From positions 124,001 through 188,000 of the IMG/VR virus record IMGVR_UViG_3300032236_001859: 64,000 bases of DNA; one strand, 5' to 3'. Below, piece after piece: positions 10,181 to 58,724 of the stretch; the first letter of the stretch is position 1; the number at the start of each line of letters is the position of its first letter. The notes below the pieces were generated by a model. That model was not told where the DNA came from. It was given only the letters and a program-made list of their open reading frames with translations, and searched no databases. The translations under genes and the position numbers were made by a program.

Positions 10181-10182
10181 GA

Positions 10183-11184: not shown

Positions 11185-11187
11185 GTT

Positions 11188-13616: not shown

Positions 13617-13619
13617 GGA

Positions 13620-13820
13620 TTACTTCTGAGCAGCCTGTGCAGCAGCGAAGGCGTCGAGGCGTTCATGTGCAGCCTTGGCGAGACCCTTGACTTGGTCATC
13701 ACTGAGTCCCATGCCACGCGCGGCTTCGTAGAAACCGAGGTCAACGGCGTTGGCGCCATCGACTTCGTCGGCGGCTGCCAGCTTTTTGAGGAGGACGTCT
13801 GAGGCAGACTTGGATAACAT
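13620..13820 (-). CDS. Small K-x-A-motif protein
   Basis: Start moved to MLSKSASDV (AAAGGA SD); 66 aa with SKSAS, KKLAA, AKAAH. Confidence 0.7.
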   Translation of the reverse strand: MLSKSASDVLLKKLAAADEVDGANAVDLGFYEAARGMGLSDDQVKGLAKAAHERLDAFAAAQAAQK

Positions 13821-13854
13821 GGTGGATTCCTTTTCTGGGAAATTGAAGACGGCC

Positions 13855-26886: not shown

Positions 26887-26887
26887 A

Positions 26888-37564: not shown

Positions 37565-38428
37565 TCACTGAGCGTCAAGCCCTGCGACATAGGCGTCCAG
37601 CTCGGGACCTGAGATATCAGTTTGTAACACACGATCCCAGAGCACACGTACTCCATGGAGATTCCGCTGCGCCGCCGGGGTTTCCCCCTCGATGTCGGCA
37701 TGTGGGATAAGGGAGTCGAGGAGCTCTGGGTTTGTCTCCTGCGTCGAGACTATCCAGTTGTGATTTCCTGCAGTGTTGGTATCAAAGGGATGCAGCAAGG
37801 TGTAATCGGCGAAGAACAGACTGCGAGGTGCGACCCCCGCGGTGCCGAGATCCTGAAGCAAAGTCTTCATGGGATCAATGTTGGGGCGCCCAATGATGTT
37901 GATCCAAATGTTCGGGGTAATCGCTGCGCATGCCTTGAAGAAGTCGACTTGATCTCCGGTGATCAGTGATTTACCATCATAGGCATCGTGAAGAATAAAG
38001 TCGTAGTGGTACCTATCACGTGGGCACCTCGCGATAAGGGGAATCAAGGCGAGGGCGTCCGCGGTGAAAACACGGAGCCGGCCGGATTCAATGGCGGCGT
38101 TGACCTCAGGGAACCCTTGCTTGCACAGGTGTACCGCGACAGGATCGATCTCGATGACGTCGAGGCGAACCCCGGGGAAATTGGCGAGTACCGCGATGGC
38201 GCCGGCACCACTACCCAGGCCGACCATGAGCCCCCTGCCATTGTGGTTCATTACCGCTGCGGCCAGCCATCCCGCGGTGTACGGAGACGCCGAGACCACC
38301 CCAGGCCCCCCGTGTTCAGATGGGGGCTCCAGAAATGAGGCGCCCTGGACCTGCCCATTGATTCGGAGCTGCCGGGCACCATGGACGTCGACGACATCGA
38401 CGACTCCGAACATGCCCTGAGCCATCAT
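37565..38428 (-). CDS. Spermidine synthase-like / class I SAM-dependent transferase
   Basis: LRINGQVQG, LMVGLGSGAG (motif I), LDVIEIDPVAV, FTADAL, YDFILHDAYDG. Confidence 0.75.
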   Translation of the reverse strand: MMAQGMFGVVDVVDVHGARQLRINGQVQGASFLEPPSEHGGPGVVSASPYTAGWLAAAVMNHNGRGLMVGLGSGAGAIAVLANFPGVRLDVIEIDPVAVHLCKQGFPEVNAAIESGRLRVFTADALALIPLIARCPRDRYHYDFILHDAYDGKSLITGDQVDFFKACAAITPNIWINIIGRPNIDPMKTLLQDLGTAGVAPRSLFFADYTLLHPFDTNTAGNHNWIVSTQETNPELLDSLIPHADIEGETPAAQRNLHGVRVLWDRVLQTDISGPELDAYVAGLDAQ

Positions 38429-39720
38429 GCCGGCTGGAGTTCGGGATGAGAGTGATCTGCAGGGGCATATCGTATGCGTGGCCCTGCACTGCGTGGTGCG
38501 CGTGGAGCCCGCGTAGGCGCTGGTGCTTCGTCTTCGTCAGACATCGACTTGTACAACAAATAGCCAAGCCCGAGTACGGCGGCACCCCCCGCGCTGTACT
38601 TCAGAATCTTCACGGCCTCTGGGGATGTGACGAAATCAGTTACCTTCTTGAAGGATTTGGAAATATCGTCGACCGACTTCGCAGTGTCTTTTACGCCGGA
38701 ACCCAAGTTGGTTACCGCGTCGGATGCCTTGTCAGCAGAGCTGGTAACTTTAGACACTGAACTATCGATATTCTTCAAAGTGGACCCAGCGTCCTGAGTC
38801 AAACTCTGGACACCTCCGAGGGCACCAGTCAATGCCTTCATCGCCGGAGTGGTTTCATTGGCAGCATTAGCCACAGCACCCGCGCCCTGTTCAACTGACT
38901 TCGCAGCACCAGCAGCGGATTGCCCGACCTCGTCCACATTCTTACGAAGAGACTTGACCCCCTCGGAGACATCCTGGCCGACCTGCTTAACTGTGCCAGT
39001 AGACGTATTGACTACATCCCGAACACCTTGATCAACTGCCGAAAGTAGACCTGGCTTTCCATCTTTGTCTTGTAGTTTCTCTTTTGTTGTCCCTGCGATG
39101 TCGTTCGCCTTGCCTAGTAAACCGGCACCATAACTTGCAGCCTCTACGCCTGCGGCAGCAGCACCTAACCCTAGTTTTTGCTTGACGACATCATTTATCC
39201 ACGTGTCCTGGCGGGCACGTGATGCCAGAGGCGACAAGACTGCGTGGGCAAGCTCTGGGTCTGCAGAGGAAACAGTTTCAACCCTATTAGTGGTGGGGGA
39301 GTGAAAACTGAACTCATGTGCACCTGTCTGTGGGTTTAACTTCCACAGTGGAGATCTTGATAAATCCATTTTGCCCTCAGCGGCATCTCGGAGATGCCGT
39401 TGCGCCAACCCAAAATCCTTACCACTCATCCCATGGCGAGTTGACTTGGTAGCCAGGGATCCCCCAAGGATCCCTGCTATTCCGGCTTCACTCCCGGCCC
39501 CGATTGGATCCTGCCCCGCAGCAGTAGCGCCTGCGTAGGTTGCACCGGCTACAGGTAACCCCACTAACAGCGGCGCCGGGGTCCTCCCCACCAATGCACG
39601 TGCACCGGTAAGTGCAGGTGATACCCCTGATGACAGCGCATCCATTGCTCCGATGAGCCCCCTGCGATCTGCGGCTACCTTTTTAGTCAGATAAAAAAGC
39701 ATGATCTGAGCTGGACTCAT
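38425..39720 (-). CDS. K-x-A protein with membrane helices and amphipathic helical repeats
   Basis: TKKVAAD at the N-terminus; glycine zippers; long SV/GV helical repeat region; C-terminal SAGGAAVLGLGYLLY. Confidence 0.65.
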   Translation of the reverse strand: MSPAQIMLFYLTKKVAADRRGLIGAMDALSSGVSPALTGARALVGRTPAPLLVGLPVAGATYAGATAAGQDPIGAGSEAGIAGILGGSLATKSTRHGMSGKDFGLAQRHLRDAAEGKMDLSRSPLWKLNPQTGAHEFSFHSPTTNRVETVSSADPELAHAVLSPLASRARQDTWINDVVKQKLGLGAAAAGVEAASYGAGLLGKANDIAGTTKEKLQDKDGKPGLLSAVDQGVRDVVNTSTGTVKQVGQDVSEGVKSLRKNVDEVGQSAAGAAKSVEQGAGAVANAANETTPAMKALTGALGGVQSLTQDAGSTLKNIDSSVSKVTSSADKASDAVTNLGSGVKDTAKSVDDISKSFKKVTDFVTSPEAVKILKYSAGGAAVLGLGYLLYKSMSDEDEAPAPTRAPRAPRSAGPRIRYAPADHSHPELQPA

Positions 39721-41804
39721 GACTGGGACTCCTGTGGAGGCATCGGTGCAGTCTGTGCGACTTCTTCTGGGTTCTGGATCTCCGGGGTCTCAGGCTTCGC
39801 CGCCTTCGACTTCCGGATCGCACGATGGATCACACGTGCCCTGGCACGATCAAGATTACGGAATGGCTTATTGATGGCTAGACCCATGGATCCGTAGACC
39901 TGTTTGAGGACTTGGTCATGGGGGAGCCACTCACCGGGGAAATCCGCGGGTGCCTCGCCTTCACCGAGATGAAAGGCGTAGTCGTAGCCGTGGTACCCAG
40001 GCTCCGCGACACCCTCATCAGGAAGAACGCGGACGTTGGATGAGTAAGGTGCAGGGGCCCCCTTACCCTCGGTGGGGAAATGAAACCGACGGTTGCTGTC
40101 ACGTCGGACCAATACTTTACCTTCGGGATCCAAATAGACGTACTCGGTCTTAGGAAGCAGCGCGGCAGCATCTGCCTGCTTCTTCAATGGCATCTCGGTG
40201 TGCGTGGCCAGTACGTCATCTCCGACCCCGCCTGTGAAAAACTCGGTCTCATCAAAGTAGGTGACCCCTGCGGCTTCAGCGGCACCCTCGTCATCGGGGG
40301 AGTTACCAACCATGCAGATCACGGGATCCAGAGAGAACGCTTCTTCGGCGTATTCGATCATCGCTGGAGACGGCTTCCGGCCGGCGTCGTCTTCATCGGT
40401 ACAGAACACGATGTCGTCGATCTCGGGGAGGAGCTCAAGGGTTTCATCATTGAAGTCGAGGACATCGGGGAGCGTGTTCGTCCCCATGACACTGCGGTTG
40501 GTTACCCCAACGATGCGGACCCCTGCAGCCTTAAACTTCTTGAGGAGTTCTTTGACCCCTGGTTTGATCTTCTGGGTGGCCTCGAGGCCGGCGTCGTCAT
40601 CCCATTCGGCGACAACGGTACCATCGAGGTCAACGAGGAGTCCTGGTGCCGACTCAGGCGTCTTGTCCTGGAACTTATGGGTTCTCATGGACCCCGAGAT
40701 CTCCGCGGCATGCTTCTCGGCGAGATTGTTGGTGTGCTTGGCCATCGTGAAGTCCCCGTTGGTTGGGGAATCCCCGCTGCGGAGGACAACCAGAACTCTG
40801 CCATCCGGGAATCTCCGGACTTCATCGAAGTAGTGGCCATGGGCGGCCTCGAGATCCTGGAGCGCCTTCACGAAGACCTTGGGGTCCTTGGGGGCATAGA
40901 TGCGACGAAGACTGTTACGGTACAGTGCCCAGCCGTGATGCTGCCGGGGCACACTGGCGAGTTTCTTACCCTTGAGCTCGGGATCCTTCTTCGCCATGTC
41001 CCTGGCGGCCTCGACGAGTTCGAGGCGGACCTCGTTGGCTCTCTTGGCCCAGTCGTTCTTAGCAATGAGTTCTTTGAGCCTGGTAATCAGCGTAGCAAAG
41101 GGGATCACATCGAAATCCTCCCGATCCGGGTGTGTGGTCCCCAGTTTGCCGTCATGGACCCCAGTGAAGAAATATGTGCGTTCGCCATCGAATGCGGAGT
41201 CATCCCAGAAGTCGTTGACCCCACTTGGCCAAATCGATTCTACGATCTCACGAGTCTCCGGAGAAATGATCTTGAGATCGGCTTCCTCGATGGCTTCCCG
41301 GATCGCGGCGAGTAACGGGGGTTCGCCGTCATCGATGCCGCCACCGGGGAACAGGATGTAGTCGCCCTTGTCGATGCCGACGACGCCATCCTTATCGAAG
41401 GCGATGAGTTCGGATCTCGGTCGCAGGAGTTGCGATGGGGAACCCTCGTGCTTATCGGGAGTGGGTTCGTTCTCAGCGGCTTTCTTGCCGAGACCCCTGG
41501 CGAAGCTGTGATCCCTGCGTTGTTTCGCCAAGGCGGCCTCATCAGGTTCGACATCCTTGGGTTTCGCCGGCAGCATCTTCTTCGCGTTGGTCCACACCTT
41601 CTCCGCAGGAGATGGGAGGTCGTGGTCCTCTGAGGTCCCCCTGCAGTCGCCACCACTGAACAGTTCAAGAAAGGTTTTGCCCTCGACCATGTGGGCATTG
41701 GTTGCCTTGACAGGATTCCCACCCGTTGGCGTCGCCACAGGTGTGTTGGTCACGGGGCGATCACTACCCCGCCCCGGAGATGGAATCTTGGTCTCCGCTC
41801 GCAT
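39717..41804 (-). CDS. Multidomain enzyme: NUDIX hydrolase + pterin-carbinolamine-dehydratase-like + HAD phosphatase + degenerate NUDIX-like domain
   Basis: Nudix box FPGGGIDDGEPPLLAAIREAIEEADL. PCD-like segment GWALYRNSLRRIY...LEAAHGHYFD...VLVVLRSG..PTNGDFTMAKHTNNL. HAD motifs LLVDLDGT, VTNRS, RKPSPAMI, MVGNSPDDEGAAEAAGV. Confidence 0.8.
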   Translation of the reverse strand: MRAETKIPSPGRGSDRPVTNTPVATPTGGNPVKATNAHMVEGKTFLELFSGGDCRGTSEDHDLPSPAEKVWTNAKKMLPAKPKDVEPDEAALAKQRRDHSFARGLGKKAAENEPTPDKHEGSPSQLLRPRSELIAFDKDGVVGIDKGDYILFPGGGIDDGEPPLLAAIREAIEEADLKIISPETREIVESIWPSGVNDFWDDSAFDGERTYFFTGVHDGKLGTTHPDREDFDVIPFATLITRLKELIAKNDWAKRANEVRLELVEAARDMAKKDPELKGKKLASVPRQHHGWALYRNSLRRIYAPKDPKVFVKALQDLEAAHGHYFDEVRRFPDGRVLVVLRSGDSPTNGDFTMAKHTNNLAEKHAAEISGSMRTHKFQDKTPESAPGLLVDLDGTVVAEWDDDAGLEATQKIKPGVKELLKKFKAAGVRIVGVTNRSVMGTNTLPDVLDFNDETLELLPEIDDIVFCTDEDDAGRKPSPAMIEYAEEAFSLDPVICMVGNSPDDEGAAEAAGVTYFDETEFFTGGVGDDVLATHTEMPLKKQADAAALLPKTEYVYLDPEGKVLVRRDSNRRFHFPTEGKGAPAPYSSNVRVLPDEGVAEPGYHGYDYAFHLGEGEAPADFPGEWLPHDQVLKQVYGSMGLAINKPFRNLDRARARVIHRAIRKSKAAKPETPEIQNPEEVAQTAPMPPQESQS

Positions 41805-42526
41805 CAGATACCTCCGAGATACCGGATCGCATAGGCTCCGAGTCTGCGGAGTTCAACTGCTGTCTTGGGAAGATTGGGGCCCATGCCATAGCTGGCACCA
41901 GTGGACTGGGTTGGCGGGCTACCGGGCTGACCACTGGCCGTGGATGTCATGGGCTGCGCCTGGGCGACACCCCCGGTGCCCGTGCCGGGGTTGGATCCCG
42001 GGATGCCACCGACTTGACCACCAGGTGGGATAATGGTCTTTGAGCGATGCTGGGGGTCCACGGCGAGATCACCAGGGCCCTGGTTCTGTTGAACCCCTAT
42101 GGCACCCGGTGCGGGTCGTGCGCTCACATTGGGAGTCGACGAGGCCCGGTTGGGGGGTTGTGGGACACCGCCAGCAACCGCCTTCTTCTCCAACTTCTCA
42201 GATTCCGTGTAATACCTGGGATTCTTGGCGAGATGATCGATCGAGAGTTCTTTCCGGGCCTCAAGATTGGGAGTGTGTTCACCCTCTTCCTTGATCCCCT
42301 TGGCGAGTTCCTTGACACTCAGCTTGCCATGCGGGGGTGTCGTGCCCCCAAGGATGGCAGCTGCATGCTTGCCGATGCCGAGCTCCCAGGACTCCTTCTT
42401 CCAGTTCTTGTGGTCACGCTTCTGCTTCGCGGCGGTTGCGTAAAACACGCGTTCGGCCTTTTCCTTACTGCCGTAGGTGTCTTCCATGGAGTTCAGAACT
42501 TTCTTGGCATCACCGACAATAGGCAT
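41804..42526 (-). CDS. DUF5661-like domain protein with K-x-A sites
   Basis: ELAKGIKEEGEHT....ARKELSIDHLAKNPRYYT matches my recollection of the DUF5661 consensus; flanked by GKHAA and EKKAV. Confidence 0.65.
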   Translation of the reverse strand: MPIVGDAKKVLNSMEDTYGSKEKAERVFYATAAKQKRDHKNWKKESWELGIGKHAAAILGGTTPPHGKLSVKELAKGIKEEGEHTPNLEARKELSIDHLAKNPRYYTESEKLEKKAVAGGVPQPPNRASSTPNVSARPAPGAIGVQQNQGPGDLAVDPQHRSKTIIPPGGQVGGIPGSNPGTGTGGVAQAQPMTSTASGQPGSPPTQSTGASYGMGPNLPKTAVELRRLGAYAIRYLGGI

Positions 42527-42557: not shown

Positions 42558-42968
42558 TCACATCATAACGGACAAAATGCTGAGGACACTGCCGGGGATC
42601 GCATTGACGTCGAGTTTGAGATCCTCTTCAGTCAACTTGGTGATCGCGACTTCAGTCTCGATGTCCAAGATGGTTTCACGTTCCGCGTTGTACTCAGCCA
42701 CTTTTTCCTGGGGGATCATTTTGTCAGTGGTGCCCTCTTTGGGCACCGCGTACTGACGGATTACAGCATCGATAGACTTCTCGACGACTTCGGCGAGGGG
42801 GCGTAAGACACTCAGGTTCTTGCCAATCTTGAAACGAGTCGAACCCGAGAACTCATAGTTCTTCAGGTAGACTTGAGTTTTACCCTCAACGGTAATAGGG
42901 GTCGGGACTCCATCGAGAGCAGTCAGGGCCTGACGGAGTTCGACGACTGCACGGTTGGTAAGTTTCAT
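42558..42968 (-). CDS. Hypothetical tail-fibre-associated protein
   Basis: 136-aa helical ORF with AAGAGGA SD, downstream of the fibre genes. Confidence 0.65.
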   Translation of the reverse strand: MKLTNRAVVELRQALTALDGVPTPITVEGKTQVYLKNYEFSGSTRFKIGKNLSVLRPLAEVVEKSIDAVIRQYAVPKEGTTDKMIPQEKVAEYNAERETILDIETEVAITKLTEEDLKLDVNAIPGSVLSILSVMM

Positions 42969-43058: not shown

Positions 43059-43643
43059 CTAGCCCGTGGGGGCCATGAGGGCCATAAGAGCGTTGGCGAG
43101 CCTGTTGGCTTCGGTTTCGAGACGCGAGGCCTCTCCCTCGGCGACACGTAGGGCCTCCTCGGCAGCGGCGTGCTCGGGGTCATCGGGTAGACTCTCGAAG
43201 ACGCTGGTGAGTCGAACGACTTCCGCGGCAGCGGCACGGGAAGCCTCCGAAGCCGCCTTGAGGGCCTCCGCGGTATTCGCGAGGTCAGCCTTACGGGTCT
43301 CGCTGATATCACGGAGTTCCTGCATGTGGCGGGCCAGGCTGTAGATGTGGGTATGAATGGCCCCCACAGTTGTCATCCCAATGATTGAGTCATCGATCAG
43401 ACTTCTCAACTTCACGGGCTCATTGGGATCCGTGGGGACATGCACCAGTGGGGGGTAGTGGTTGCCAAGTGACTTCTCGACATACTCCCCTTTGACGAGG
43501 ACCAAGGCGACTTCTTCTTCGTGCATCGTCGCACTAGGCACTCCATCAACTGGGTTGCTATTATTGTTATGCCAGACCCGTCGGCGTGGCACCCCGGGCT
43601 CAGTGTTCGGGGCATAGTTGGGTACCTGATATGATGCTGGCAT
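43059..43643 (-). CDS. Hypothetical protein with C-terminal coiled coil
   Basis: 194 aa; AGGAAG SD; Ala/Glu heptads. Confidence 0.7.
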   Translation of the reverse strand: MPASYQVPNYAPNTEPGVPRRRVWHNNNSNPVDGVPSATMHEEEVALVLVKGEYVEKSLGNHYPPLVHVPTDPNEPVKLRSLIDDSIIGMTTVGAIHTHIYSLARHMQELRDISETRKADLANTAEALKAASEASRAAAAEVVRLTSVFESLPDDPEHAAAEEALRVAEGEASRLETEANRLANALMALMAPTG

Positions 43644-43668: not shown

Positions 43669-46600
43669 TCATTGTGCAGTCAGGGTGACGTCGTTGCCGT
43701 CGCCCCCAACATACGAAATCGTGAAGTTCCGTACAGTGCCTGTGCTGGCAACGGTGGCTCCTTCGGGGAGCCCGTTGAATACGCCAGTTACTGGTCCCGC
43801 GGATTGTCTGTCAATGATCGTGAAGACCTTTCCGACCGCAGGGGAGTACCCCAACCGAATCGAAAGTGTGGCATTGTTGAGAACAACGCCATCTCCGGTA
43901 CTCGGGATCACGAGCTGATCATACTGGGTGCCCGCGGCATCCCCGTTGAGATCCAGGATCACCGTGGCGCCTGAGTTATTCAGATTCAAAGACTTCATGC
44001 TGAGTGCTGCAGTGGCCACGGGAGTCCCAGGACTCATGGTCCCAGAGGTCACGGTGACCACGGAGTTGAGGACCCCGGAACCCCCCAGCGTGGTCCCAGC
44101 ACCAACATTGAATGCTGCGAAGTCTGGCCTCACGCCTTCATCGTTGTCATTGTGGTTATACAGTAGAGTGCCCTCGACAAGGCTCCACGTAAATGATCCC
44201 CTTGCGGAAGTCCCATCGGTATGCGTGTAATCGGCCTCCGCGATGACCAGTGTACCCGCACCAACCTTGATCAGAGTCGTGGCTCCAGTTCTCTTGCGAA
44301 CCATGGTCAGACAACTCTGACCACCTGAGTCTCCCCATGTCGGGCAGAAGATGACCTCACGGGTTTCCGTACTCCCCAACACCATGGTATCCCCGGCGTG
44401 GCGAACAAACATCTTGAGGACCTGATTGTCGGTGTCTGCATTGGCGTGGATGTTGATGTCACCACCAAACATTCCTGCCAGGGTTTGTCCCGCTGCGTAT
44501 TTCGGTGACCCCAGGAGCGTGGCCAAGTTGCTGCCTGATCCGGCATCGCTGGATGCCCCGAGGACACCACCGATCTGCTTGTTCAATGTGGGGTCCGCGG
44601 TACCCAGTGATCCAATGAGGAAACTCTTGCCCTCTGGGATCTGATACGTGGTCCCTGCCCCTGAAGTCGCCGTGAGCAGGAACCCAAAATGTGCGGTGTG
44701 GTCAACTGTATCCGTGGCACGATGGACTGCGGAGATATACCCGGGACCCACGGCACCGGGGAGGAAGCTGTTGACTCCTGAGAAACGGATGAACCCAAGG
44801 GCGCCTTGCGTGGCTGTACCCACTGGGAGCACTGTGGGGTAGACGCCGAAAAGACCAAGGGTCAGACCCCCGTATCCATTGACCAGATTTTGCTTTAGAC
44901 TGGAAGTCCCATAGTTCGACGCTGCTGTGCCTCCAAAAGGAGCAGTTGGAATCCCTGACATCGAGTACGTGCCAGATAACACGAGTTCTGTGATCGCGTT
45001 ATCACCTGTGGCGTAGCCTTGAAATATCACACTACTGCTACCGACAAACATGCCTGATAGCGTTGCGCGGGTTCCACCTGATGTACTAAGCCCAGGTCCG
45101 AGACTCCAAACCGTGAGACCAAGTGGCCCAAGCAGTGAGAAATTATTGGGATACACGGAATCGGAAATCGACGCAGTATCCAGTAAGAGATTTCCCCCCT
45201 TACCTCCAGTGACAATGGGGCCGGTCCCCGCGGATGCCCCTTTTGCCAAGCGAAGATTGATAGCCCCAGCCTGTGCCCCAGACTCCTGTAGGGCGAATCC
45301 ACCACTCCACGCAGAGTTATCCCCACTAAGAATCAACAGGCTGTAGTCACCACCTTGACCATAAGAATTGACGTGTCTTATGGAACCTGCTCCACTTATG
45401 GTACCAGATAGTTCCACTCTTCCAGTCATATTAACTGGATTAACTGCTAAGGGGCCGTGGAGCGTTACGCTGCCCTGTATTACTGCACCGGTTCCCGCAG
45501 AGTTGGGTGTTCCGATATACCCCCCTGCAGCACCGACAACGATATTCGTATTGGAATAAATATCCAGTGCATGGCTGAAAAAGAGCACACCTCCCATTAG
45601 ATAGATTGTGCGGGGGGCAGTGAGACCCCCAAGACTACCACTGGCGCCTGCCGTCAAGGTTCCAGCAAGAATGTAAATATCCCCTATGGCGTTATTCGCG
45701 TTACTTAGGGTAACCGTGTTAGCCAAAAACTTAGTAAATGCGTAGCCGCCCGTGATCTGTGACGCGATGATAAAACTGTTCTGATGACTCCCCACTATTA
45801 GATCCAGTCCGTTGCCTGTTGTAAGTGCTCCGCCCGTGATGGCTACAACCCCGTTAATCGTACTAGCGATCATGCCACTGGTCACTGTCAAAGTTTTTCC
45901 AGTAGCGATTGTTATAGTCCCACTGCCCAGTGTGACTCGAAGAGAATTGATGGCGACATCATTAGCGATAGTCCCAGTAAGTGTTCCTGCTTTGATGTTT
46001 TGGCCTGCGGCCCATAGCGAGCAATCGTTTTGAGACGTGTAGGCCGGGGGTCCGAAGGTGCCCGATGCCGCGGCGATATAATCACCACCATCAACTCCAG
46101 GTACGAAGCCTTGGGTGGCCCCTATCAATAGGGCATTACCTCCGGCGCCTGAAACACTGCTGCCACCTGCAGTAGTGGGTGCGTTCGTAAAAGAAGGGAT
46201 AAACCCCGTATTCGTGAATTGGTTGACAACCCCACCAACTGCGCGAGTGTACCCAGCACCCCCTGCGGTTCCTGTAAATGCCAGATTGACTGATGATGCC
46301 TTTATGTTGCTTGAACTAATTGAACTAATCCCGGCCTGGATCGAAAGACTGTATAGGGTCTGGGAATGCGTGTATGCCCCGGCATCTGGGTAGGGGATGT
46401 TGAATGTGCCCCCGCCAGTGGTGCCCCCTAGAATCAGACGCGCCGATGGATTGATACGATTCGTGACGTTCCTATTGCTCGCCTCGTTATTGGGTATTGT
46501 CTCACCACAGTTCAGGGTGCCAGACCCCATGACCGTGATTGGAAGATTAGCGACTGTTATTCGCCCATAGTTAGCAGCTGTCCCAGGTAACCCTACAGTG

Positions 46601-49071
46601 GCCCCCAGGTTTATGAGTAGACTGGAAGTCCCTGTTAGGTCTCCTTGACTGGCGACACCATTGTTGGTTAAGAATAGGGTGGGGCCAGACACCGAACTGC
46701 CCATCAGTGAGTTCGTGGCGACACCTCGAACCACGGTGACCCCTGAGTAGTCCTGCGAGGCTGCGATGGCGAGAGCCCCAACTGCGGCCATAGCTGAAGT
46801 GGGTATCACTGCTCCAGTGGCGACATCTAACGGATTCGCCCCTGTGAGTGCGTTGACTCCTGAAAGCAACATCGCACCGCCGTTCAGGGAGAAAGGGGGT
46901 GCAAACTTGTAACCAACGGTGCTGTTATATGGCGTTATCGACCCCGCAAAGGTGATAGTGGTATTGTTCGCGGTCGCCATGAATCCAAGACGAACATCCT
47001 TATTGAGGCCGGCTGCACTGAGATCAATGTTACCTGTCTTGTTATCCAGTGCTAGGATTGATTCAGTCTGTGTCGTGAATCTTGCCAGAACGGCAGCAGT
47101 GAATAAAGCATTGCTACCAAACCCGAAAACAATTCCAGCTGGAACCGTAATTGGATTTGGGGTAGCCGTGTTCCCACCTGTATTGGAGCCATCTGAGCCC
47201 ATCGCTGCCAGGGAGTCGAATCGAAAGGCACCCCGACTGGATGTATCCAGTATGAATCCAGCATCAAATGCGATGTTGGATCCCGCGAGTGCAAAGCGAT
47301 TAAAATTAGCAGAAACCCCGACACGTAGGACCAGGGGTCCTGCACCTCCGACATCCTTGGAGATCGCACCACTGAATATCGTTTCAGAGTTCTGAGATGT
47401 ATAGCTGCCAAGGGCACCACCTTTGATGCCTATAACAAGTGGATCAGTGATTGTAGCAGCACCACTCCGGCTGGCCTGATCGCGGATTCCACCCCCATTG
47501 ATGAGAACACTGCCGCCTCCAAACATGCGGCCTGAAAGTGCATTAGTTAATCCGGTTACCCCGAAAACACCTGAGCTCAGGGTAATCCCGCCTGTGTACC
47601 CCGTTGCCGTGTACGCTGCATGGACCTCAGCAGAGGGGGACATCGCCACTGTGATGGCCTGTGCGGAGGCCCCTATGGTCCCCAGGTTACCCGCACCCCC
47701 ACTTGGATACAGTCCGTTGAGCCCCCCATTACCGGATCCCGCGATGACAAGATTGGCATTGAGAGTGAGCCCCCCTGTGTACGTGAATGCCCCACCACCG
47801 GTCTGATTAAATGCTAGGGTGCGTGGACTCCCATTGATGGAGCTCAGAGTTGTCGCACTTACGGTGGCGCTTACACCCTGACTACTGCTGCCACCAAACG
47901 CCATGGTGCCAGTTAGGGCTGGATACGGGCGCCCAAGTGCCATCCCATTACCAGGACTAAAAAATAAGGCACCTGCACTTGGCAGTGACAGACTCGCGAC
48001 TCCAATGAAATCACCACTTAGAGTGCTTGTTAGACCAGCTAGACTGTTGAATGCCCAAGATGCCCCAGTCTGTGCACCGCGAATACCAATGGTCCCGCCC
48101 GCATTGATCGTGATACTATTGGTAAGTATTAACGATGGATTGCTGGCGTTCAGTGATCCCCCGTAATTGACAACATAAGCACCGCTACCCATCGCGGTCT
48201 GAGTGTTTGCAGCGAGGTTACCACCAACATTGTTACCCGAGAACGTGATACCGTCACCTACGGTAATCGCGCCTGTGTTCGTTGCGGCGTCAACTGTGGA
48301 GCCCTGAGTAACGGTTCCGGGGCCACGGTATGTGATCACGTTACTACCCCACTGCATCGTGGCATCAAAGGCGACGTTGCTGAGGGCTGTTATGATCACA
48401 GGGGCCACAATGGACTGACCGGCTGCGAATGCTAAGGAGCCCGCCGGGGAGATGTCACCAAGGGTGCATGAGCCTTCAATGCGAATTGTTGCCGTGAATG
48501 TACGACCGTTGTTATCCCCCATGCTGAGGCGGCCATTCTTAATAGTGATAACCCCTGTACCAAATGAATTAGCATTCGTGGAGAACACCCAAGCAGTGTT
48601 CCCATCGATGATGAGTCCTCCGCTACCAACACTGGAGGCACTTGTGATCGACCATGGCCCCGATTTTACGGTGAGAGTGTTTGTAAAGCGTAGTGCGGTA
48701 CCCATGGAAACCGCGCCTGCTGTGCTGTTGTCCCACTGTGCCCCTGGCGCGATTTGTAGATTACCTGATGCAAAGGTGAGTGTGCCATTGCGTACCAATA
48801 GATTACGGACTGTCTGGAGGCCATTCACGGTTACCGTATAGGATCCAGTTGCATTGCTCCCCGCAGCGAACACGGCATCACTTCCCTGGATCCATGCCCG
48901 TGTGGCCAGGAGACCCGCGGGATCCGTGGTCCAATAACTATTGGTCCCCCATGTCCCCGTCGCAGTCGTCGAGTTCGTGGCGCCGACACTGGTACCATTG
49001 GCATCCCAATACAGCGTAATCGGTGCGTACCTGTAGGAGGGGTAACAGATATTACCGGAGCCGATTGACAT
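43669..49071 (-). CDS. 1800-aa beta-helical adhesin / tail-fibre-like protein with autotransporter-associated beta-strand repeats
   Basis: TLYWDANG...GTW...W..GSDAVF N-terminus; repeats such as FTKFLANTVTLSNANN...YILAGTL, IKVGAGTL and LGGSG...SPG; C-terminal YDQL...FTIID...GVFNGLPEG...FTISYVGGDGNDVTLT. Confidence 0.75.
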   Translation of the reverse strand: MSIGSGNICYPSYRYAPITLYWDANGTSVGATNSTTATGTWGTNSYWTTDPAGLLATRAWIQGSDAVFAAGSNATGSYTVTVNGLQTVRNLLVRNGTLTFASGNLQIAPGAQWDNSTAGAVSMGTALRFTNTLTVKSGPWSITSASSVGSGGLIIDGNTAWVFSTNANSFGTGVITIKNGRLSMGDNNGRTFTATIRIEGSCTLGDISPAGSLAFAAGQSIVAPVIITALSNVAFDATMQWGSNVITYRGPGTVTQGSTVDAATNTGAITVGDGITFSGNNVGGNLAANTQTAMGSGAYVVNYGGSLNASNPSLILTNSITINAGGTIGIRGAQTGASWAFNSLAGLTSTLSGDFIGVASLSLPSAGALFFSPGNGMALGRPYPALTGTMAFGGSSSQGVSATVSATTLSSINGSPRTLAFNQTGGGAFTYTGGLTLNANLVIAGSGNGGLNGLYPSGGAGNLGTIGASAQAITVAMSPSAEVHAAYTATGYTGGITLSSGVFGVTGLTNALSGRMFGGGSVLINGGGIRDQASRSGAATITDPLVIGIKGGALGSYTSQNSETIFSGAISKDVGGAGPLVLRVGVSANFNRFALAGSNIAFDAGFILDTSSRGAFRFDSLAAMGSDGSNTGGNTATPNPITVPAGIVFGFGSNALFTAAVLARFTTQTESILALDNKTGNIDLSAAGLNKDVRLGFMATANNTTITFAGSITPYNSTVGYKFAPPFSLNGGAMLLSGVNALTGANPLDVATGAVIPTSAMAAVGALAIAASQDYSGVTVVRGVATNSLMGSSVSGPTLFLTNNGVASQGDLTGTSSLLINLGATVGLPGTAANYGRITVANLPITVMGSGTLNCGETIPNNEASNRNVTNRINPSARLILGGTTGGGTFNIPYPDAGAYTHSQTLYSLSIQAGISSISSSNIKASSVNLAFTGTAGGAGYTRAVGGVVNQFTNTGFIPSFTNAPTTAGGSSVSGAGGNALLIGATQGFVPGVDGGDYIAAASGTFGPPAYTSQNDCSLWAAGQNIKAGTLTGTIANDVAINSLRVTLGSGTITIATGKTLTVTSGMIASTINGVVAITGGALTTGNGLDLIVGSHQNSFIIASQITGGYAFTKFLANTVTLSNANNAIGDIYILAGTLTAGASGSLGGLTAPRTIYLMGGVLFFSHALDIYSNTNIVVGAAGGYIGTPNSAGTGAVIQGSVTLHGPLAVNPVNMTGRVELSGTISGAGSIRHVNSYGQGGDYSLLILSGDNSAWSGGFALQESGAQAGAINLRLAKGASAGTGPIVTGGKGGNLLLDTASISDSVYPNNFSLLGPLGLTVWSLGPGLSTSGGTRATLSGMFVGSSSVIFQGYATGDNAITELVLSGTYSMSGIPTAPFGGTAASNYGTSSLKQNLVNGYGGLTLGLFGVYPTVLPVGTATQGALGFIRFSGVNSFLPGAVGPGYISAVHRATDTVDHTAHFGFLLTATSGAGTTYQIPEGKSFLIGSLGTADPTLNKQIGGVLGASSDAGSGSNLATLLGSPKYAAGQTLAGMFGGDINIHANADTDNQVLKMFVRHAGDTMVLGSTETREVIFCPTWGDSGGQSCLTMVRKRTGATTLIKVGAGTLVIAEADYTHTDGTSARGSFTWSLVEGTLLYNHNDNDEGVRPDFAAFNVGAGTTLGGSGVLNSVVTVTSGTMSPGTPVATAALSMKSLNLNNSGATVILDLNGDAAGTQYDQLVIPSTGDGVVLNNATLSIRLGYSPAVGKVFTIIDRQSAGPVTGVFNGLPEGATVASTGTVRNFTISYVGGDGNDVTLTAQ

Positions 49072-49072
49072 A

Positions 49073-52000
49073 TCAGGGCACCTTGGCGTTCAGCGACATC
49101 GGGATGGCATCCCAGGTGACGCCGCCATCGAGGGTAGTCATCCCAATGATGTCGACCCCGGAAGCCGTGAGCACAGCGGCGATACCGCCGGACCAACGTG
49201 TATTCGCTGGGAAGTTGAAAGTCTGGGAACCCCCGTTGGTGATGTGGAGGACAACCGTCTTGGAAACCCCCGATGCCGGGAGGTTCGAGAACGCCAGGGT
49301 CACCGCTCCGGTAACCGTCATGGTGATCCGCGTCGCGGTGAGACAGTTAATCGTGATTGTCCCAGCACCCGTGTTACCAATTGCATTCACGGGTTCGTTT
49401 ACGTTTTTGATAATGAGTGTGCCGCCAACGGAGACGTCTCCGCCGGCGTATATGGAGCCCAGGAGACCCATGCCACCCGCTGATGTAATGGACCCCGTCA
49501 ATGTGCTCACCGATGCGGCCGCCGACGTGACTATTAAGGCGCCTGCCCCTGGGGACGCCGAAAACGCACCACCGATTTGAAGACCACCATCACCCCAGAT
49601 ACGAACCTTCTCAGTGGTCAAGATGGTGCCGGGGGTTGTTGTCCAGAGGCCGATGCGGGTGCCCTGTGCGGCGTCTGTCCAGTTCTCAGCAGTGAAGATC
49701 GAGACGAACCCACGCGCCGCAGATGAGTAACCCGTGGCCCCGTAACCCCACGCTGAGAGGTTGGTGATTTCATCGCCAGCCTGGAGTGCACTGGGTGCGG
49801 TCAGGGTACCCCGACATGCGCGTCCCGCGAATACCGCGTAACCGCCGCCGATGCCCATGGCGACATCGGCGAGAACACGGGTGACCCCTGCGTTACCATT
49901 ACCATTGATGACCTGTGCGATTGTACCCGCAGGGGCCGCTGGTGCCGTGATCCCTGTAGCCAAGACTTTGAGGCCACCAAGGGTGCCCACACCCCCAGCA
50001 GTGAGTGCGCCACCGACGTTGAGAGCACCGCCGATGCCGACACCACCGGTGACCACAAGGGCGCCATTGGCCGCAGTGGTCGATACCGTGGTATCCCCGA
50101 AGCGGACGAGACCCAGACCAGTCTGAATCGCGTAATTGGTTTGACCGAAAGTGATGTCCTCGAGGAGGAGCCCATAGGCCGTGGTCAGGGTTCCCGCGGA
50201 ACCCCCGAGGGATCCATAGAACAATGCCGCAGTGGTACAGGTACCCCCCGCGGTGTCCATGTAGAACTCGGAGTCGATGCCATAGAACCCACTAAGGGTC
50301 CCCGCCGTCGTCGATACCGTGAGATCCGCACGATACCCGTAAATGACTCCGAAGTTATATCCCCCGTACAGACGCTGGGAAACCGTGTCGCCCATGTATC
50401 GCCCATTACGGGATACCGTGGGGGTAATGTTGACTTCAAGGTAGCGTGCCGTGCGGTCCACGGTGGCATTAGGGGCATATGAGATGACTTGCTTGATGCC
50501 ACCGACCATGTTGAGCGCGGAGACCCCAGTGGCCCCCACGGCAACCGAGGTATCCCCAAGGGTGACCAAACCGGTACCCGTGTAGATCGCATAGTTCGTG
50601 GTGGCCCCAGTGATACTGGGGAGATAGAGCCCGTATCCTGTGGTGATGGTGCCCGCGGTGTACGACCAGTTGCCTCTGAACAACGATGCGGCACCAACTG
50701 TGGACCCCGCACAGTTGAATGATAACGAGGTCCGGTACCCAATAATCGAGTTGACTGTGCCTGCTGTCTTCGTGTCAGTCAGCGTGGTGTTCTCACCCAC
50801 TGCGATACTGAAGTCCTCGGCTCCCGTGAGTGCAATGGAGTGGTACTGACTATAGAACGCCCCAATCGAGGAACTCAAGGGGTTCAGGGTCACACTGTCA
50901 TAGATACCGTAGACGGTCCCCGTGAGATGCCCCAGGGTGCCATACAGGGTACGAATGCTGCCAGTAAGATTCAGGGCACCTGGAGTCGTGCTATCCGTGG
51001 TCGCCGTGCTCGTCGAGTTCAGGGTGCCCGCAGCAAAGATGTCTCCACCGGCGCCGATACCCCCGGCGACCTTCAGCGCACCGGTGACCGCGCTAATTGA
51101 CGCCGTCGTATTCGCAATGGTGAGACCACCAGTGGCCAGTGTGCTATTGTATGAGAAATTGGTGGATCCCGTGAGGATGCCGTCACCACCTCCAAACCCG
51201 ACGAGACCTGTGGCCAGCGCTGCCGTGATCGTGCAACTGAGAACCCCAAGTGCGGAGAGGTTGAGCCCAGTCCCGATCGAGATCTCTTCAATCGCACCGG
51301 GATCCGCGGAGAACCTGCCAAGGACTCGGGCTGTATTCATGGTGAGCCCAGAAGACCCCACGGCCCCATTGAGGGCACCATCAGTGATCCCATAACCACT
51401 CAGGGTGGTGGGGAGATCCGAACCAATGTGATTCCAGCTCAACGAGGGAATATCGGTTTCGACTAGAGCTCGGAACGCAGGGACTGCAGAGGATCCCAGG
51501 GGATCACTGGGCCCCGCGAAGACAAGACCCGGGGACTGAACCGCCCATTCCGCGCTGAGATCCCCTAACGTGGTCACCGGGGAGAACGTGATGCTGAACT
51601 CAGGTGGCAACACGAGTCCAACGGAGGTCACCGTACCGGTACCCAGGATGGGCGCCCATGCCGAACCCGTGTAGTGGACATAGGAATGCGTGGCGCGGTT
51701 GAAGACAAAAACGCCTTCAGCTGCTGGGGTGAACACCCAGGCGCCGTCACGATATGCGGCTAAAGCATTGGGATGCCCGAACCAGGCCCCCGTGGGGAGT
51801 GTGCCCGTGATCCAGCGCTGTTCTGCACTCGGGGACCCTGGGGGTGTATTTGTGATGGCTTGAACGGGGCCACCCCAGAACCCATCAGCGATTCTGCGAT
51901 CGACGACCTGACGTGTGGTCAAATGGGCATCTGCGGTAGCCGCGATACCCGCGATATTGGCTACGAAGGGGTGGAGACCGTCGGTGGTGACAACGTCAGT

Positions 52001-52093
52001 CTCCAGCGTGCTCGTCGCGATAGGATTTGTTGCGGAGACTCGACGCAGCTGCCTGCCGTCAAAGAATACCGGCTTCTGAGGAGTGCTTGGCAT
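49073..52093 (-). CDS. Tail fibre protein with N-terminal DUF2793-like domain
   Basis: TPPGSPSAEQRWI...PTGAWFGHPNALA..RDGAWVFTPAAEG (DUF2793-like); three ST.TGAL.V.GG.GIGG repeats; common phage fibre C-terminal domain (TLAFSN...NFPANTRWSGG...GVDII...DGGVTW). Confidence 0.75.
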   Translation of the reverse strand: MPSTPQKPVFFDGRQLRRVSATNPIATSTLETDVVTTDGLHPFVANIAGIAATADAHLTTRQVVDRRIADGFWGGPVQAITNTPPGSPSAEQRWITGTLPTGAWFGHPNALAAYRDGAWVFTPAAEGVFVFNRATHSYVHYTGSAWAPILGTGTVTSVGLVLPPEFSITFSPVTTLGDLSAEWAVQSPGLVFAGPSDPLGSSAVPAFRALVETDIPSLSWNHIGSDLPTTLSGYGITDGALNGAVGSSGLTMNTARVLGRFSADPGAIEEISIGTGLNLSALGVLSCTITAALATGLVGFGGGDGILTGSTNFSYNSTLATGGLTIANTTASISAVTGALKVAGGIGAGGDIFAAGTLNSTSTATTDSTTPGALNLTGSIRTLYGTLGHLTGTVYGIYDSVTLNPLSSSIGAFYSQYHSIALTGAEDFSIAVGENTTLTDTKTAGTVNSIIGYRTSLSFNCAGSTVGAASLFRGNWSYTAGTITTGYGLYLPSITGATTNYAIYTGTGLVTLGDTSVAVGATGVSALNMVGGIKQVISYAPNATVDRTARYLEVNITPTVSRNGRYMGDTVSQRLYGGYNFGVIYGYRADLTVSTTAGTLSGFYGIDSEFYMDTAGGTCTTAALFYGSLGGSAGTLTTAYGLLLEDITFGQTNYAIQTGLGLVRFGDTTVSTTAANGALVVTGGVGIGGALNVGGALTAGGVGTLGGLKVLATGITAPAAPAGTIAQVINGNGNAGVTRVLADVAMGIGGGYAVFAGRACRGTLTAPSALQAGDEITNLSAWGYGATGYSSAARGFVSIFTAENWTDAAQGTRIGLWTTTPGTILTTEKVRIWGDGGLQIGGAFSASPGAGALIVTSAAASVSTLTGSITSAGGMGLLGSIYAGGDVSVGGTLIIKNVNEPVNAIGNTGAGTITINCLTATRITMTVTGAVTLAFSNLPASGVSKTVVLHITNGGSQTFNFPANTRWSGGIAAVLTASGVDIIGMTTLDGGVTWDAIPMSLNAKVP

Positions 52094-55073: not shown

Positions 55074-55106
55074 AATAAAAAGGGCTCCCAGGTTTCCCTG
55101 GGAGCC
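55074..55106 (-). terminator. Intrinsic terminator downstream of the RNR gene
   Basis: 10-bp stem GGCTCCCAGG/CCTGGGAGCC, GAAA tetraloop, followed by CTTTTTATT. Confidence 0.88.
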
Positions 55107-55226: not shown

Positions 55227-58200
55227 TCAGGCGTGCTGTAAGGTGCAGGCTCCACCGGCACATGCCATCTCGGGTTGCGCCCCCTTGGTACCATCGGTTT
55301 CCTCAACCATCAGGGAGTAATCGACATCGCGCCAGTTCCGGGATAGACGTTCCCAGAGATGGAGATTGTTGACTTCCTTGAGGCAATACGTCATCCGCTT
55401 CAGAGCAGCGACACGATCTGCATCGGGGGTAGATGTGGTCAGCAACGCTGGGTACTGGAAGTAATTTGTGGCGAACTGTACGGCCCTGCGGACCCAATCC
55501 TTCTTGAGTTCGTGGACATGCTCGTAGGCCTCACGGATGGCATCGGGTAGCGCGTTGGGATCCGCGGGATACGGAACTCCGTTGGCAAGAATCGAGGCTT
55601 CACCGAGCCCCATCACGGTATCGCATGCCAACCAGAGGTTGTTACCGAAGGCGTGGAGCCCATCGACGATGAGACCAGATGCAAAGAAGGCACCGCGGCC
55701 ATAGCGCTCCAGGATTTCACTCTCGGTACGGACCTCACAGAACGGGGCCTGGGGATAATCGAGATCCCCTGAGGTCCCCAGGATACTGACTCCCGTGAAG
55801 GACTCCCGGTGCTCGTAGATGTAACGTGCGGCGTCTTCCTCTTGGTTCTGACGAATCGTGATCGTGTTGGAGACATTGTGGTGCAGCCAGGGCTTCACAG
55901 CACGCTCGGGCACACTGCCAGCTGCAACCCAGTTGTCCTGGGTGAGCTTGACGTACTCGAGCTGCTTGAGCCCATTGACCTCACGCCGCGTCAGGGCTTC
56001 ATCGGAGGCCTCGATGCAGAACGTGATCACCGCGGTGTTCCCGTTGGGTTCCCACACCGAGCGTTCAACGGCATCGGGGTTGTGAACCTTGAAGTATTGG
56101 AAGGGGGCCTCGTTGACGTTGGCCTGGGCTCTGCGGAAGTACCGCTTGGCGTGTTGAGCATGGATCCCACTCGATGTCCCGAGAAGGCATGACGTTGATC
56201 CCGCGGGTTTAACACAGGTCGCCCGTGCCGTGGGCCGGATACCCAGCCGGGGTGCCAGATCAGCGTTGACATCGAGGATGAGCTTGGCGAGGTCACGCTG
56301 CCGCTGGGGATCAAAGGACTGCGAGGGGTTGTCCATCATCCCAGTCATGGAGACCCCGAGGAGGGCCTCACGTTTCGCGATACACTCGCTGACATTACCG
56401 AGGTAGTCGAACTTGGTATAGCCGGCCTGGAGAGTGCCCAGGATCGCCGCTGCGGTGCACGCACGTCCCCAGTCCTTATCGGTACGGCAGGCCTTGGCGT
56501 TGACTTCACAGAGATTACAAAAGCTCCACCCTGAGATCTCTACGTTTGCATATTCAACGACTTCTACGGAATGTTCCCCGTTGATCTCATCGAGATCTTT
56601 GTAGGAAATCGCTGGGTACATCCCGGTCTCCACGCAGTTCGAGACACTATGACCTCCTGTCCAGTAAGTGTGACTCTCATTGTCAACTGTGATATCATAC
56701 ACCTCCATATCACCAAGCGAAGTAACTGATCGAATAGCATAGGTATCCTGCGTGCGCCCTGAAATCCGTATGTCGCATGCAGCTGATAAGCGAGATACCT
56801 TGCTAGAGTGGATAAACCCTATCAGTTTTGCGAACTTACAACGGTCGACGCTGATATTGATGTCGTAGCTTTCTTTGCACTCATACACCCCATTACTAAA
56901 CTCGACGTCGTGCGCCCTGTTAGTAGTGAAATAGCTGCGAATACCGAGAGATGACAACGCAGTCTGTACATCATCTCGCAAACCAGGGCTACACGTCTTC
57001 AGCGTAACTCTATTAGCAACGACACTTCCATTTGCAGAGTACAGCCCACGTAAAACAGAACACAGGATATCCTGCCCAGATTGTAAAAACCGCTGTGGGA
57101 TCCTACGCGATGGGATGGTTGGCATGTCTTCTTGGGTGAGCAACGAGAAGTCTTGAACTTTGAACAGCCTGGTGCTCCCACCGTAACCCTCCCTGGATAC
57201 CCATGGCATACAGTTGAAAATCTCCTGATCGCCCGCACCTATGTTGAGGAGTAGACCTCCCCCAGCCTTGTGCCACGTGCCATCGCCAAGCAACAACCCA
57301 ACCATAATGTTTGCATCGTTATGCACAGGGGCTTCGCCGACATCCGCTGTAAGCACGTCTATAGATTCTGCCAACCCAACCTCGACCTTCTCCCCATGCT
57401 GCTCCACCCGATGATTAGCCGTACCTACAAATACACCTGCAGACGTGCGGTATTCCGATACCGGCTTTATTCCAGTGCTCCATTTCCTCAAAACACGAGT
57501 CCAGCCCTCGCGGCTCCAAATCACGCTACCTACATCGATATCTGCAAAAGTGCGCAAACCATCGGGGGTAAGAACAGTAGCACAGGCGGGTTGACAGGGG
57601 TTCACCATGAGCTCGGAGCTATCCGACCACACGAACCCGGGCTCCCCGTACTGGCGGCGTGCCAGCATGAAGATGTCATGGAAGGCTTCCCAAGTAGTCT
57701 CACCCCGGATCAACATCGCCGAGTTATTAGAACGCGCCCGCTGGGGGTTGTCCTGCATCCAGTTCCCAGTCTTCGCGTTCATCATTTCGGGGTCATCAAC
57801 ACTGAACAAGCAAATCGTGGCGCTACGACGAACCCCACCGGCGAGGACGGCATCCGAGGCGTGCATGATGATGTCGTAGACATCGATGGGGCGGAGGTGG
57901 CAGTCTTCACCATGGCACCGGGTCAACGCGGTATCAAGGACCCCACGAATCTTTTCCAGGGATGCCGAGAGAGGCCCAGGCCCTGGAGCCTTGCCTGCAC
58001 CCGTGCTCAGACTCGAGCCCTGGTTACGGATGCGCGAGTAATCAAAGCTGACATGGCTGCCGACATAATCGGAGAAGAACCCGGGGTGCTGGAAGGACAC
58101 CTTGGCATCATTGCCTGGTGCGGTTTCTTCGGCGAACTCTTGCATCCCGACACCCAGGCATCCATAGGAGGCCAGGAGAACACCGAGGGCATCAGCCCAG

Positions 58201-58637: not shown

Positions 58638-58724
58638 ATAACACTCCATGTAGTCGTTGGTTTTTGTGTCACAGGGGTTACATCCTGTGGGGGTTTACTC
58701 TCAGTCAAGTCCGTTGGTGTCCGC

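Follow-up and report, generated by a model that had tools for sequence, protein, structure and literature searches.

A giant autotransporter-type beta-helix homolog in the tail-fibre cassette of a freshwater jumbo phage, with relatives among surface proteins of PVC bacteria

We analysed a window of 64,000 nucleotides, bases 124,001 to 188,000 of IMG/VR virus record IMGVR_UViG_3300032236_001859, and within it a minus-strand gene that follows a tail-fibre gene and encodes a protein of 1800 residues, here called P0001. A preliminary description, made from the letters alone, had taken this protein for a host surface protein used by a phage for adsorption or mimicry and for a sign of a host in the Planctomycetota-Verrucomicrobiota-Chlamydiota (PVC) group. 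As judged from sequence, P0001 is a clear homolog of secreted proteins that carry autotransporter-associated beta strand repeats (PATR) and PEP-CTERM sorting tails, though it stands formally outside the Pfam family PATR. In its models a single chain forms one right-handed beta-helix, of the PATR type seen in autotransporter passengers, predicted to run over ~1700 residues. We consider it rather likely that P0001 is a virion-borne adhesin or side-fibre subunit encoded in a swappable host-range cassette, which draws on a gene pool common with the surface adhesins of PVC bacteria.

Homology and predicted fold of P0001

A word search returned 32 homologs of two kinds, phage-borne and bacterial. 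The likeness to secreted PVC proteins, first noticed at the two ends of the protein, proved well above chance, with full-length homologs at E values from ~1e-143 down to 0 and long colinear BLAST alignments spanning residues ~170-1640 or more. The phage-borne kind comprises P0003, P0004, P0005 and P0034. Phage copies are 50-54% identical to P0001 over the full length, and the bacterial protein P0006 shares 45-49% identity with it across residues 242-1797. PATR/PEP-CTERM proteins of Verrucomicrobiota, Kiritimatiellota and Planctomycetota are colinear with P0001 over ~1500 residues at 35-49% identity and have the same N-cap motif, the same motif block and the same C-terminal GGDGNDV module. Unlike them, P0001 has no signal peptide, PEP-CTERM tail or extra extensions, and it sits in a phage tail-fibre cassette. 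P0034 is the full-length form of a truncated gene call, P0016 (1442 aa), on contig L005, where the frame is open from 9107, one nucleotide past the fibre gene, and gives 1740 aa (9107-14329, plus strand); a 115-aa reverse ORF (open reading frame) call at 9601-9948 of that contig is probably spurious.

Assignment to the PATR type rests on where the repeats fall in the relatives. P0001 does not reach the PATR (PF12951) gathering threshold of 27 bits, and scans against Pfam (any family at E <= 1), NCBIfam and PHROGs gave it no match. Sub-threshold PATR matches occur inside the core of two phage copies (P0005, 23.9 bits; P0034, 16.8 bits), and the threshold is passed by the bacterial proteins P0006, P0012, P0018 and P0020; among 15 aligned members, PATR was found in eight and PEP-CTERM in six. 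The P0006 match (residues 405-434) lies inside the stretch that aligns to P0001, from residue 242 onward, which places PATR repeats within the aligned region of the homologs. The nearest ESM Atlas clusters are likewise PATR, whether ranked on sequence features (0.95) or on shape (TM score 0.45-0.67). Searches of PDB sequences found no match to P0001 or to the profiles A2 and A3, and a search with residues 1-300 found two phage copies only. An IMG/VR scan with the single protein gave no match; the same scan with alignment A1 gave one additional sister phage, L019.

The terminal motifs quoted in the preliminary description are present as given, ITLYWDANG...GTWGTNSYW...GSDAVF at the N-terminus and FTIID...GVFNGLPEG...FTISYVGGDGNDVTLTAQ at the C-terminus, and the protein stops two residues past the motif GGDGNDVTLT. 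The lack of a signal peptide, a PEP-CTERM tail and a beta-barrel also holds, with hydrophobicity, tail-motif and Pfam tests all in agreement. In the first 45 residues of P0001 the top 10-residue hydrophobic window reaches 0.62 with no K or R ahead of it, against 2.0-3.2 with K or R in bacterial homologs, and neither the hydrophobic h-region nor the basic n-region of the Sec signal peptide that marks type Va autotransporters was found. The ATG is the first start past the upstream stop and the open frame has just 1806 codons, so no in-frame upstream extension of the protein is possible. A PEP-CTERM tail (PF07589; [VIL]PEP...RRR) is present in 13 bacterial homologs and in neither P0001 nor any other phage copy, and the autotransporter barrel (PF03797) was not found in P0001.

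These features separate the two kinds of homolog. All phage copies begin with a common short leader followed by ITLYWDxNG, and none has a signal peptide or anchor; the phage-specific leader, ~17 residues of the type M-[SP]-[IV]-G-G-G-N-I-x-Y-P, stands in place of the bacterial signal peptide. P0004, P0005 and P0034 terminate straight after GGDGNDxTLT, where the tail of P0003 diverges. The bacterial homologs have a classical signal peptide, at once followed by the LYWDxNG cap, and extra N- or C-terminal extensions.

Two AlphaFold2 models were built from family alignments, for residues 1-900 (predicted local distance difference test, pLDDT, 84.7) and 901-1800 (pLDDT 81.1). Both are beta-helix-like, with short strands throughout from residue ~66 onward, and the first ~60 residues are poorly defined. 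The top Foldseek matches were Ag43, EspC, EspP and Hbp. VIA-align ranked a metagenomic beta-helix (7jvi, Z score 15.5) and Ssp (15.1) first, then Pet, IgA1 protease, IcsA, EspC, EspP, Hap, pertactin and Ag43 (Z 11-14), with phage tailspikes and polysaccharide enzymes lower (Z 7-10). The last 150 residues (model residues 751-900) superpose on the autochaperone region of IcsA (3ml3) with Z 11.4 and a root-mean-square deviation of 2.9 over 132 residues. The predicted models therefore combine a passenger-like helix (Z 13-15.5 to passengers) with an autochaperone-like C-terminal cap, as in type Va autotransporters, and the strongly conserved C-terminus of P0001 may be a folding cap. If a residue count is assumed for each turn of the beta-helix, the rod would by our rough estimate be several tens of nanometres long.

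In its predicted structure P0001 thus resembles the type Va passengers (Ag43, pertactin, IcsA, Ssp and the SPATE stalks), as a single-chain right-handed beta-helix at Z 11-15. Unlike these autotransporters it has no barrel translocator, signal peptide or sequence-level similarity, identity in the structural alignments being ~10-17%. Phage tailspikes and receptor-binding fibres, such as those of P22/Sf6 and cyanophage Pam1, are like P0001 in their beta-helix, their place next to a fibre gene and their cassette-like hypervariability; in contrast to them, P0001 shows a weaker similarity (Z 7-10), is much longer (1800 aa) and has bacterial adhesins rather than phage proteins as its relatives. The viral models of BFVD gave no good match (best E 1.7e-3). 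A PATR-annotated phage record does precede P0001, the 510-aa A0A6J5M3L0 (UniProt/BFVD; 'Autotransporter-associated beta strand repeat [uncultured Caudovirales phage]'), which is only a weak structural match to it (rank 13, E 0.2, TM 0.19-0.29).

The fibre cassette and segment exchange

The gene upstream of P0001 encodes a mosaic tail fibre. Its DUF2793 match has an E value of 8.6e-13 and 48.4 bits against the Pfam cut-off of 27, it matches the tail-fibre PHROGs 7049 and 9017, and tblastn aligns it to annotated tail-fibre genes of Cylindrospermopsis, Roseobacter and Synechococcus phages. DUF2793 is a domain of Rcc00171, the tail-fibre protein of RcGTA, and DUF2793 proteins are treated as tail-fibre proteins (PMC5026251). 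A single nucleotide lies between the fibre stop and the ATG of P0001 (junction TGA-T-ATG). A complex prediction for fibre residues 708-1006 with P0001 residues 1-250 scored 0.00, which we count neither for nor against contact between the two. The placement of P0001 between a DUF2793 fibre gene and fibre-associated genes therefore stands on the upstream side; the downstream genes have no family matches, though they co-vary with the fibre cassette. The nearer of these encodes a helical or coiled-coil protein of 194 residues, which is only 42-49% identical in other phage contigs and so varies with the cassette; an Atlas search with it returned helical viral hypotheticals only.

The same arrangement recurs elsewhere. 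In six phage contigs a DUF2793-type fibre gene is directly followed by a homolog of P0001: the window, L005 (200.6 kb, GC 59%), L018 (15.4 kb, 57.5%), the IMG/VR contig L019 (72.9 kb, 58%), L002 (417.8 kb, 41.5%) and the freshwater contig L006 (14.6 kb, 38%), so that in every one of these it occupies the tail-fibre cluster, as a receptor-binding protein would. The C-terminal domain of the window's fibre is common to the upstream fibre genes of those contigs at 60-79% identity; for the genes directly upstream of the homologs it is 72% in L002, 79% in L005 and 60% in L006. The L002 fibre gene encodes 2136 aa and holds an internal duplicate of this domain, and immediately upstream of it lies an IS605 OrfB/TnpB (Cas12f-like) gene (L002:2183-3478, minus strand).

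Protein identity to the window identifies L005, L018 and L019 as close sister phages, and comparison with them showed that the fibre and the genes behind it diverge far more than the backbone (Table 1), an excess of divergence typical of receptor-binding proteins. At the nucleotide level, a blastn identity of 79-95% along the backbone vanishes between ~42,700 and ~51,400, a cassette of ~8.7 kb; within it, only the junctions between fibre end and P0001 start and between P0001 end and next gene stay similar. In 50-residue windows, P0001 and its L005 ortholog are ~80% identical at residues 1-100, 17-40% at 450-1400, ~50% at 1400-1700 and 78-90% in the last 100. Sister phages thus keep the ends and differ in an exchanged centre, the pattern expected of a host-range cassette, and this supports the earlier idea of a swappable central region.

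The AT-richer middle that had been noticed in the gene is borne out as well. GC content at third codon positions (GC3), computed in 100-codon bins, is mostly 0.42-0.54 at residues 301-1400 versus 0.62-0.65 at 1401-1800; 6 of the 18 bins fall under the 5th percentile of the background (mean 0.637, standard deviation 0.083, from 154 bins in other genes of the window), and all six lie within residues 301-1400. The low-GC3 centre may have come from donors of lower GC: the copy carried by L006, a contig of 38% GC, shares 60-70% identity with residues 800-1100. The view of the middle as a foreign piece had to be given up, since it is the conserved core of the family and not a foreign insert. We found no tandem repeats inside the gene and no excess of promoters or terminators.

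Exchange by segments was also evident from phylogeny. Trees built on three extracted segments (residues 300-700, 900-1350 and 1390-1660) are mutually incongruent, with phage and bacterial rows mixed. In the 1390-1660 tree, P0001 groups with P0004, P0003 and the bacterial P0006 (support 100), and the sister copy P0034 with P0005, the bacterial P0010 and proteins from Kiritimatiellia and Chthoniobacteraceae metagenome-assembled genomes (MAGs; support 99). In the 900-1350 tree P0005 is paired with the PEP-CTERM protein P0008 (support 100), and in the 300-700 tree it is P0034 that pairs with P0008 (support 96). An approximately unbiased test on residues 1390-1660 rejected a single phage clade (delta lnL 84, p 0.00012), for a phage group that was set by genomic context but tested after the tree had been seen. 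On these alignments and trees, P0001 belongs to a gene family long resident in phages, whose carriers range from 38 to 59% GC and whose members have repeatedly traded segments with one another and with bacterial genes. The claim of a captured host surface protein consequently survives in part: the homology to PVC surface proteins runs from end to end, but the segments are mosaic and do not reflect one recent capture.

Host and probable role

We scanned 185,579 genomes, one per species in GTDB, for the family motifs and found eight loci in seven genomes: three in Chthoniobacterales or Chthoniobacteraceae, one in Kiritimatiellia, one in Verrucomicrobiota, one in a genome named only 'bacterium', and two paralogs in a Kuenenia-labelled MAG. 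Every named genome in the scan belongs to the PVC group, in keeping with the PVC bias suspected from the sequence, and several of the homolog-bearing MAGs derive from lakes. The paralogs of the Kuenenia-labelled MAG (G001, GCA_964654285.1) are the closest bacterial relatives of P0001 in most segments. The two paralogs of this MAG (its loci being L003, L004, L010 and L012) were also seen to share a ~240-aa C-terminal extension instead of PEP-CTERM. No match was found in 29 of 30 relatives of G001, the remaining one giving a weak match to the C-terminal module, so the family is patchy. We regard the restriction of the homologs to PVC bacteria, read from sequence comparison, as a good lead to the host and not as proof.

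Together with this distribution, the coupling to the fibre gene and the exchange of the centre suggest how P0001 may act. It would be assembled onto the tail in the cytoplasm and would therefore need no export. The conserved N-terminal ~100 residues and the autochaperone-like cap would be kept for attachment, for folding or for both, and recombination might make use of these conserved ends as flanking stretches of homology. Contact with the host surface would fall to the exchangeable central helix, which would thereby set host range. With the bacterial homologs limited to PVC, the host would be a PVC bacterium, most likely a lake member of Verrucomicrobiota, Kiritimatiellota or Planctomycetota. 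P0001 would in this way function like a phage receptor-binding fibre while being built like an autotransporter or PATR passenger. We infer virion association, a role in adsorption and a PVC host. The interpretation in the preliminary description holds in part, backed by the PATR/PEP-CTERM homology, the PVC-only named genomes, the absence of export and anchor parts from the phage copies, the link with the fibre gene and the exchange of the centre.

Several observations weigh against this account or narrow it. The PATR fold occurs in many phyla, so the PVC signal is specific to this subfamily and rests on the one subfamily and its eight loci. The name of G001, 'uncultured Candidatus Kuenenia sp.' (Planctomycetota), is doubtful because its loci have a GC of 63-67%; Kuenenia has a GC of about 41%. 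The prolyl-tRNA synthetase of G001 is 52% identical to that of a Kiritimatiellia MAG and of another type than the Chthoniobacterales enzymes, which does not decide the matter, and the HZS_alpha family, matched in G001 and also in a Bacteroides control, is uninformative on the label. The phage genome holds no transfer RNA genes. Cultured phages gave no match to P0001 (tblastn, 50,697 records), and among sequencing runs its gene was found in the probable source run only and in no RNA run. The conserved ends could reflect folding constraints alone. Finally, the classical beta-helix proteins with which phages bind receptors form trimers and have an anchor domain at the N-terminus, and no anchor domain of the tailspike type was recognised in P0001.

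It is also conceivable, if unlikely, that P0001 is not part of the virion and acts in the cytoplasm of the infected cell or once the cell has lysed. It might then be a free adhesin or decoy, for instance, coating host cells or debris or mimicking a host surface protein. Host-like genes of jumbo phages are often auxiliary, and the mimicry mentioned in the preliminary description agrees with the homology. Such a role sits poorly with the lack of a signal peptide, which leaves an 1800-residue beta-helix of extracellular type no route to the surface before lysis, and the fact that six contigs have it coupled to the fibre gene, with which it is swapped jointly, is the signature of an adsorption module and not of auxiliary genes.

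We likewise think it improbable that P0001 is a tailspike-like depolymerase, a beta-helix with an enzymatic site that degrades host capsule or exopolysaccharide. Beta-helix proteins beside phage fibre genes are often depolymerases, and a site could be sought in the motif block at residues 1390-1640. This block contains the motifs QNFVNGQGG, GALGFVRF, SFIPGAVGPGY, LPEGKSFxIGSLG, GGDINIHAN, FTPT[WY]GDSG and KRTGxTTL, several of which fall in low-confidence loops of the model; D1581-S1582-G1583 is invariant, D1538 and H1542 are nearly so, and these residues lie partly in flexible loops. There are weak structural matches to tailspikes, a PL6 lyase, GH55 and pectate lyase. The block is, however, also conserved in the bacterial PEP-CTERM cell-surface homologs, the matches to enzymes and tailspikes are partial and at Z 7-10 stand below the autotransporter adhesins (Z 11-15.5), and no hydrolase or lyase was matched in Pfam, PHROG or PDB sequences. 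The motif block was also seen to occur in two subtypes with characteristic indels, each with phage and bacterial members.

A more specific form of the adhesin model, which we put forward as speculation with a low chance of being right, is that the phage adhesin recognises its own bacterial homolog, by homotypic binding, as in self-associating autotransporters of the Ag43 type, to a PEP-CTERM-anchored PATR adhesin of the host. If so, the phage would track variants of the host adhesin by copying host gene segments into its fibre cassette, which would account for the way phage and bacterial copies are interleaved in the tree of one segment after another. An artefact of binning or assembly, by which bacterial DNA ended up in a viral contig, is very hard to credit: the JGI label 'fibronectin-binding autotransporter adhesin' on homologs and the compositional dip could hint at foreign DNA, but the genome is complete at 216 kb with terminal repeats, five further contigs, independent and sampled separately, have their genes in this order too, the phage copies have their own common leader and no export signals, and same-strand phage genes flank P0001 on both sides.

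Taking P0001 as a virion-borne adhesin, two known systems offer parallels. The gp38 of T2-type phages is an adhesin encoded just downstream of the fibre gene, a position like that of P0001. The BACON-domain protein of crAssphage is a phage product with a surface domain typical of the host and has been used in host prediction; like P0001, it is of a protein type typical of the surface of one bacterial lineage and hence a host clue. It differs in that only a small domain is involved, whereas P0001 is shared as a whole 1800-residue protein whose segments have been repeatedly exchanged with bacterial genes. Host-type domains in phage structural genes, beta-helix receptor-binding proteins and PATR-annotated records of uncultured phages were thus already known. 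What is new is a full-length, secretion-independent giant adhesin helix in the fibre cassette of a jumbo phage and its segment exchange with PVC surface proteins, and in the literature on PATR or PEP-CTERM with phage fibres, or on jumbo phages of Verrucomicrobia, we found no description of such a system.

To our knowledge, almost nothing has been reported on adsorption by phages of Verrucomicrobiota, Kiritimatiellota and Planctomycetota, very few of which are cultured. The locus offers a candidate host-range determinant for a freshwater jumbo-phage lineage and, from sequence, a clue to the host that does not depend on CRISPR spacers. It makes a clear case of one recombining gene pool that supplies both the fibre cassette of a phage and the surface adhesins of hosts, it suggests that a giant autotransporter-type beta-helix is usable without any secretion machinery, and it flags the family-wide motif block for study.

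Genome setting and other genes of the window

The source record is a complete virus genome of 216,043 bp with direct terminal repeats and a GC of 57.2%. It comes from a freshwater jumbo phage whose ties to cultured phages are all distant: Salmonella phage Arash and Vibrio phages D69, D181 and D148 are the only cultured relatives detected, through the portal gene, which lies 7 kb from P0001. Almost all long ORFs of the window are on the minus strand. The features discussed here are collected in Table 1.

Table 1. Features of the window, in window coordinates, with protein identity in the sister phages where given
Feature	Positions	Strand	Description	Identity in sister phages
Rpb1 domain-5 piece	in 16137-18041		extra piece of RNA polymerase	
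Fused multisubunit RNA polymerase beta/beta'-like ORF	21031-26958	-	1975 aa; split by intein with LAGLIDADG domain	
Portal gene	34495-36375	-	27% identity, E 8e-52, to annotated portal of Salmonella phage Arash; also matches Vibrio phages D69, D181, D148	94-97%
431-aa ORF	38425-39720	-	weak tail or tape-measure-like PHROG piece	30-34%
NUDIX + HAD phosphatase fusion	39717-41804	-	695 aa	95-96%
DUF5661-like protein	41804-42526	-	240 aa; adjoins NUDIX/HAD gene; varies, 51-81%	
136-aa protein	42558-42968	-	distal edge of variable cassette	55-60%
194-aa protein	43059-43643	-	helical or coiled-coil; AGGAAG 8 nt ahead of ATG; starts 25 nt past P0001; co-transcribed	49%
P0001, PATR-type adhesin homolog	43669-49071	-	1800 aa; one open frame; single-chain beta-helix (predicted)	42-46%
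P0001 aa 1651-1800	43672-44121	-	C-terminal cap module ending GGDGNDVTLT; 78-90% identity among four phage copies	
P0001 aa 1390-1640	44152-44904	-	conserved motif block; family-wide invariant columns in the alignment	
P0001 aa 301-1400	44872-48171	-	central beta-helix, exchanged part; low GC3; nearest relatives switch by segment (P0003, P0004, bacterial P0006)	
P0001 aa 1-100	48772-49071	-	leader and LYWDxNG...GTW...W N-cap; identity 65-80% among phage copies, 22-41% to bacterial	
Tail-fibre gene	49073-52093	-	1006 aa, mosaic; DUF2793 N-part, variable middle, conserved C-terminal domain aa 708-1006	N-part 59-72%, middle replaced
Terminator-like hairpin	55083-55106	-	10 pairs, 8 of them G-C, then T run	
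Ribonucleotide reductase (RNR)	55227-58649	-	LAGLIDADG intein ~56637-57595, aa ~353-668	84-97%
287-aa protein				94-95%

The C-terminal module of P0001 is not confined to the ends of proteins, as a module of ~200 residues corresponding to it recurs internally in other PATR proteins found by BLAST. The hairpin, a strong one, stands directly after the RNR gene, where the transcription unit with the fibre cassette probably begins. The RNR intein is missing from the orthologs of L005, L018 and L019, where alignments join across the intein site. The 431-aa ORF has a GC3 of 0.507 against the background of 0.637, and both of its neighbours are 94-96% identical in the sister phages; it looks like a second swapped cassette.

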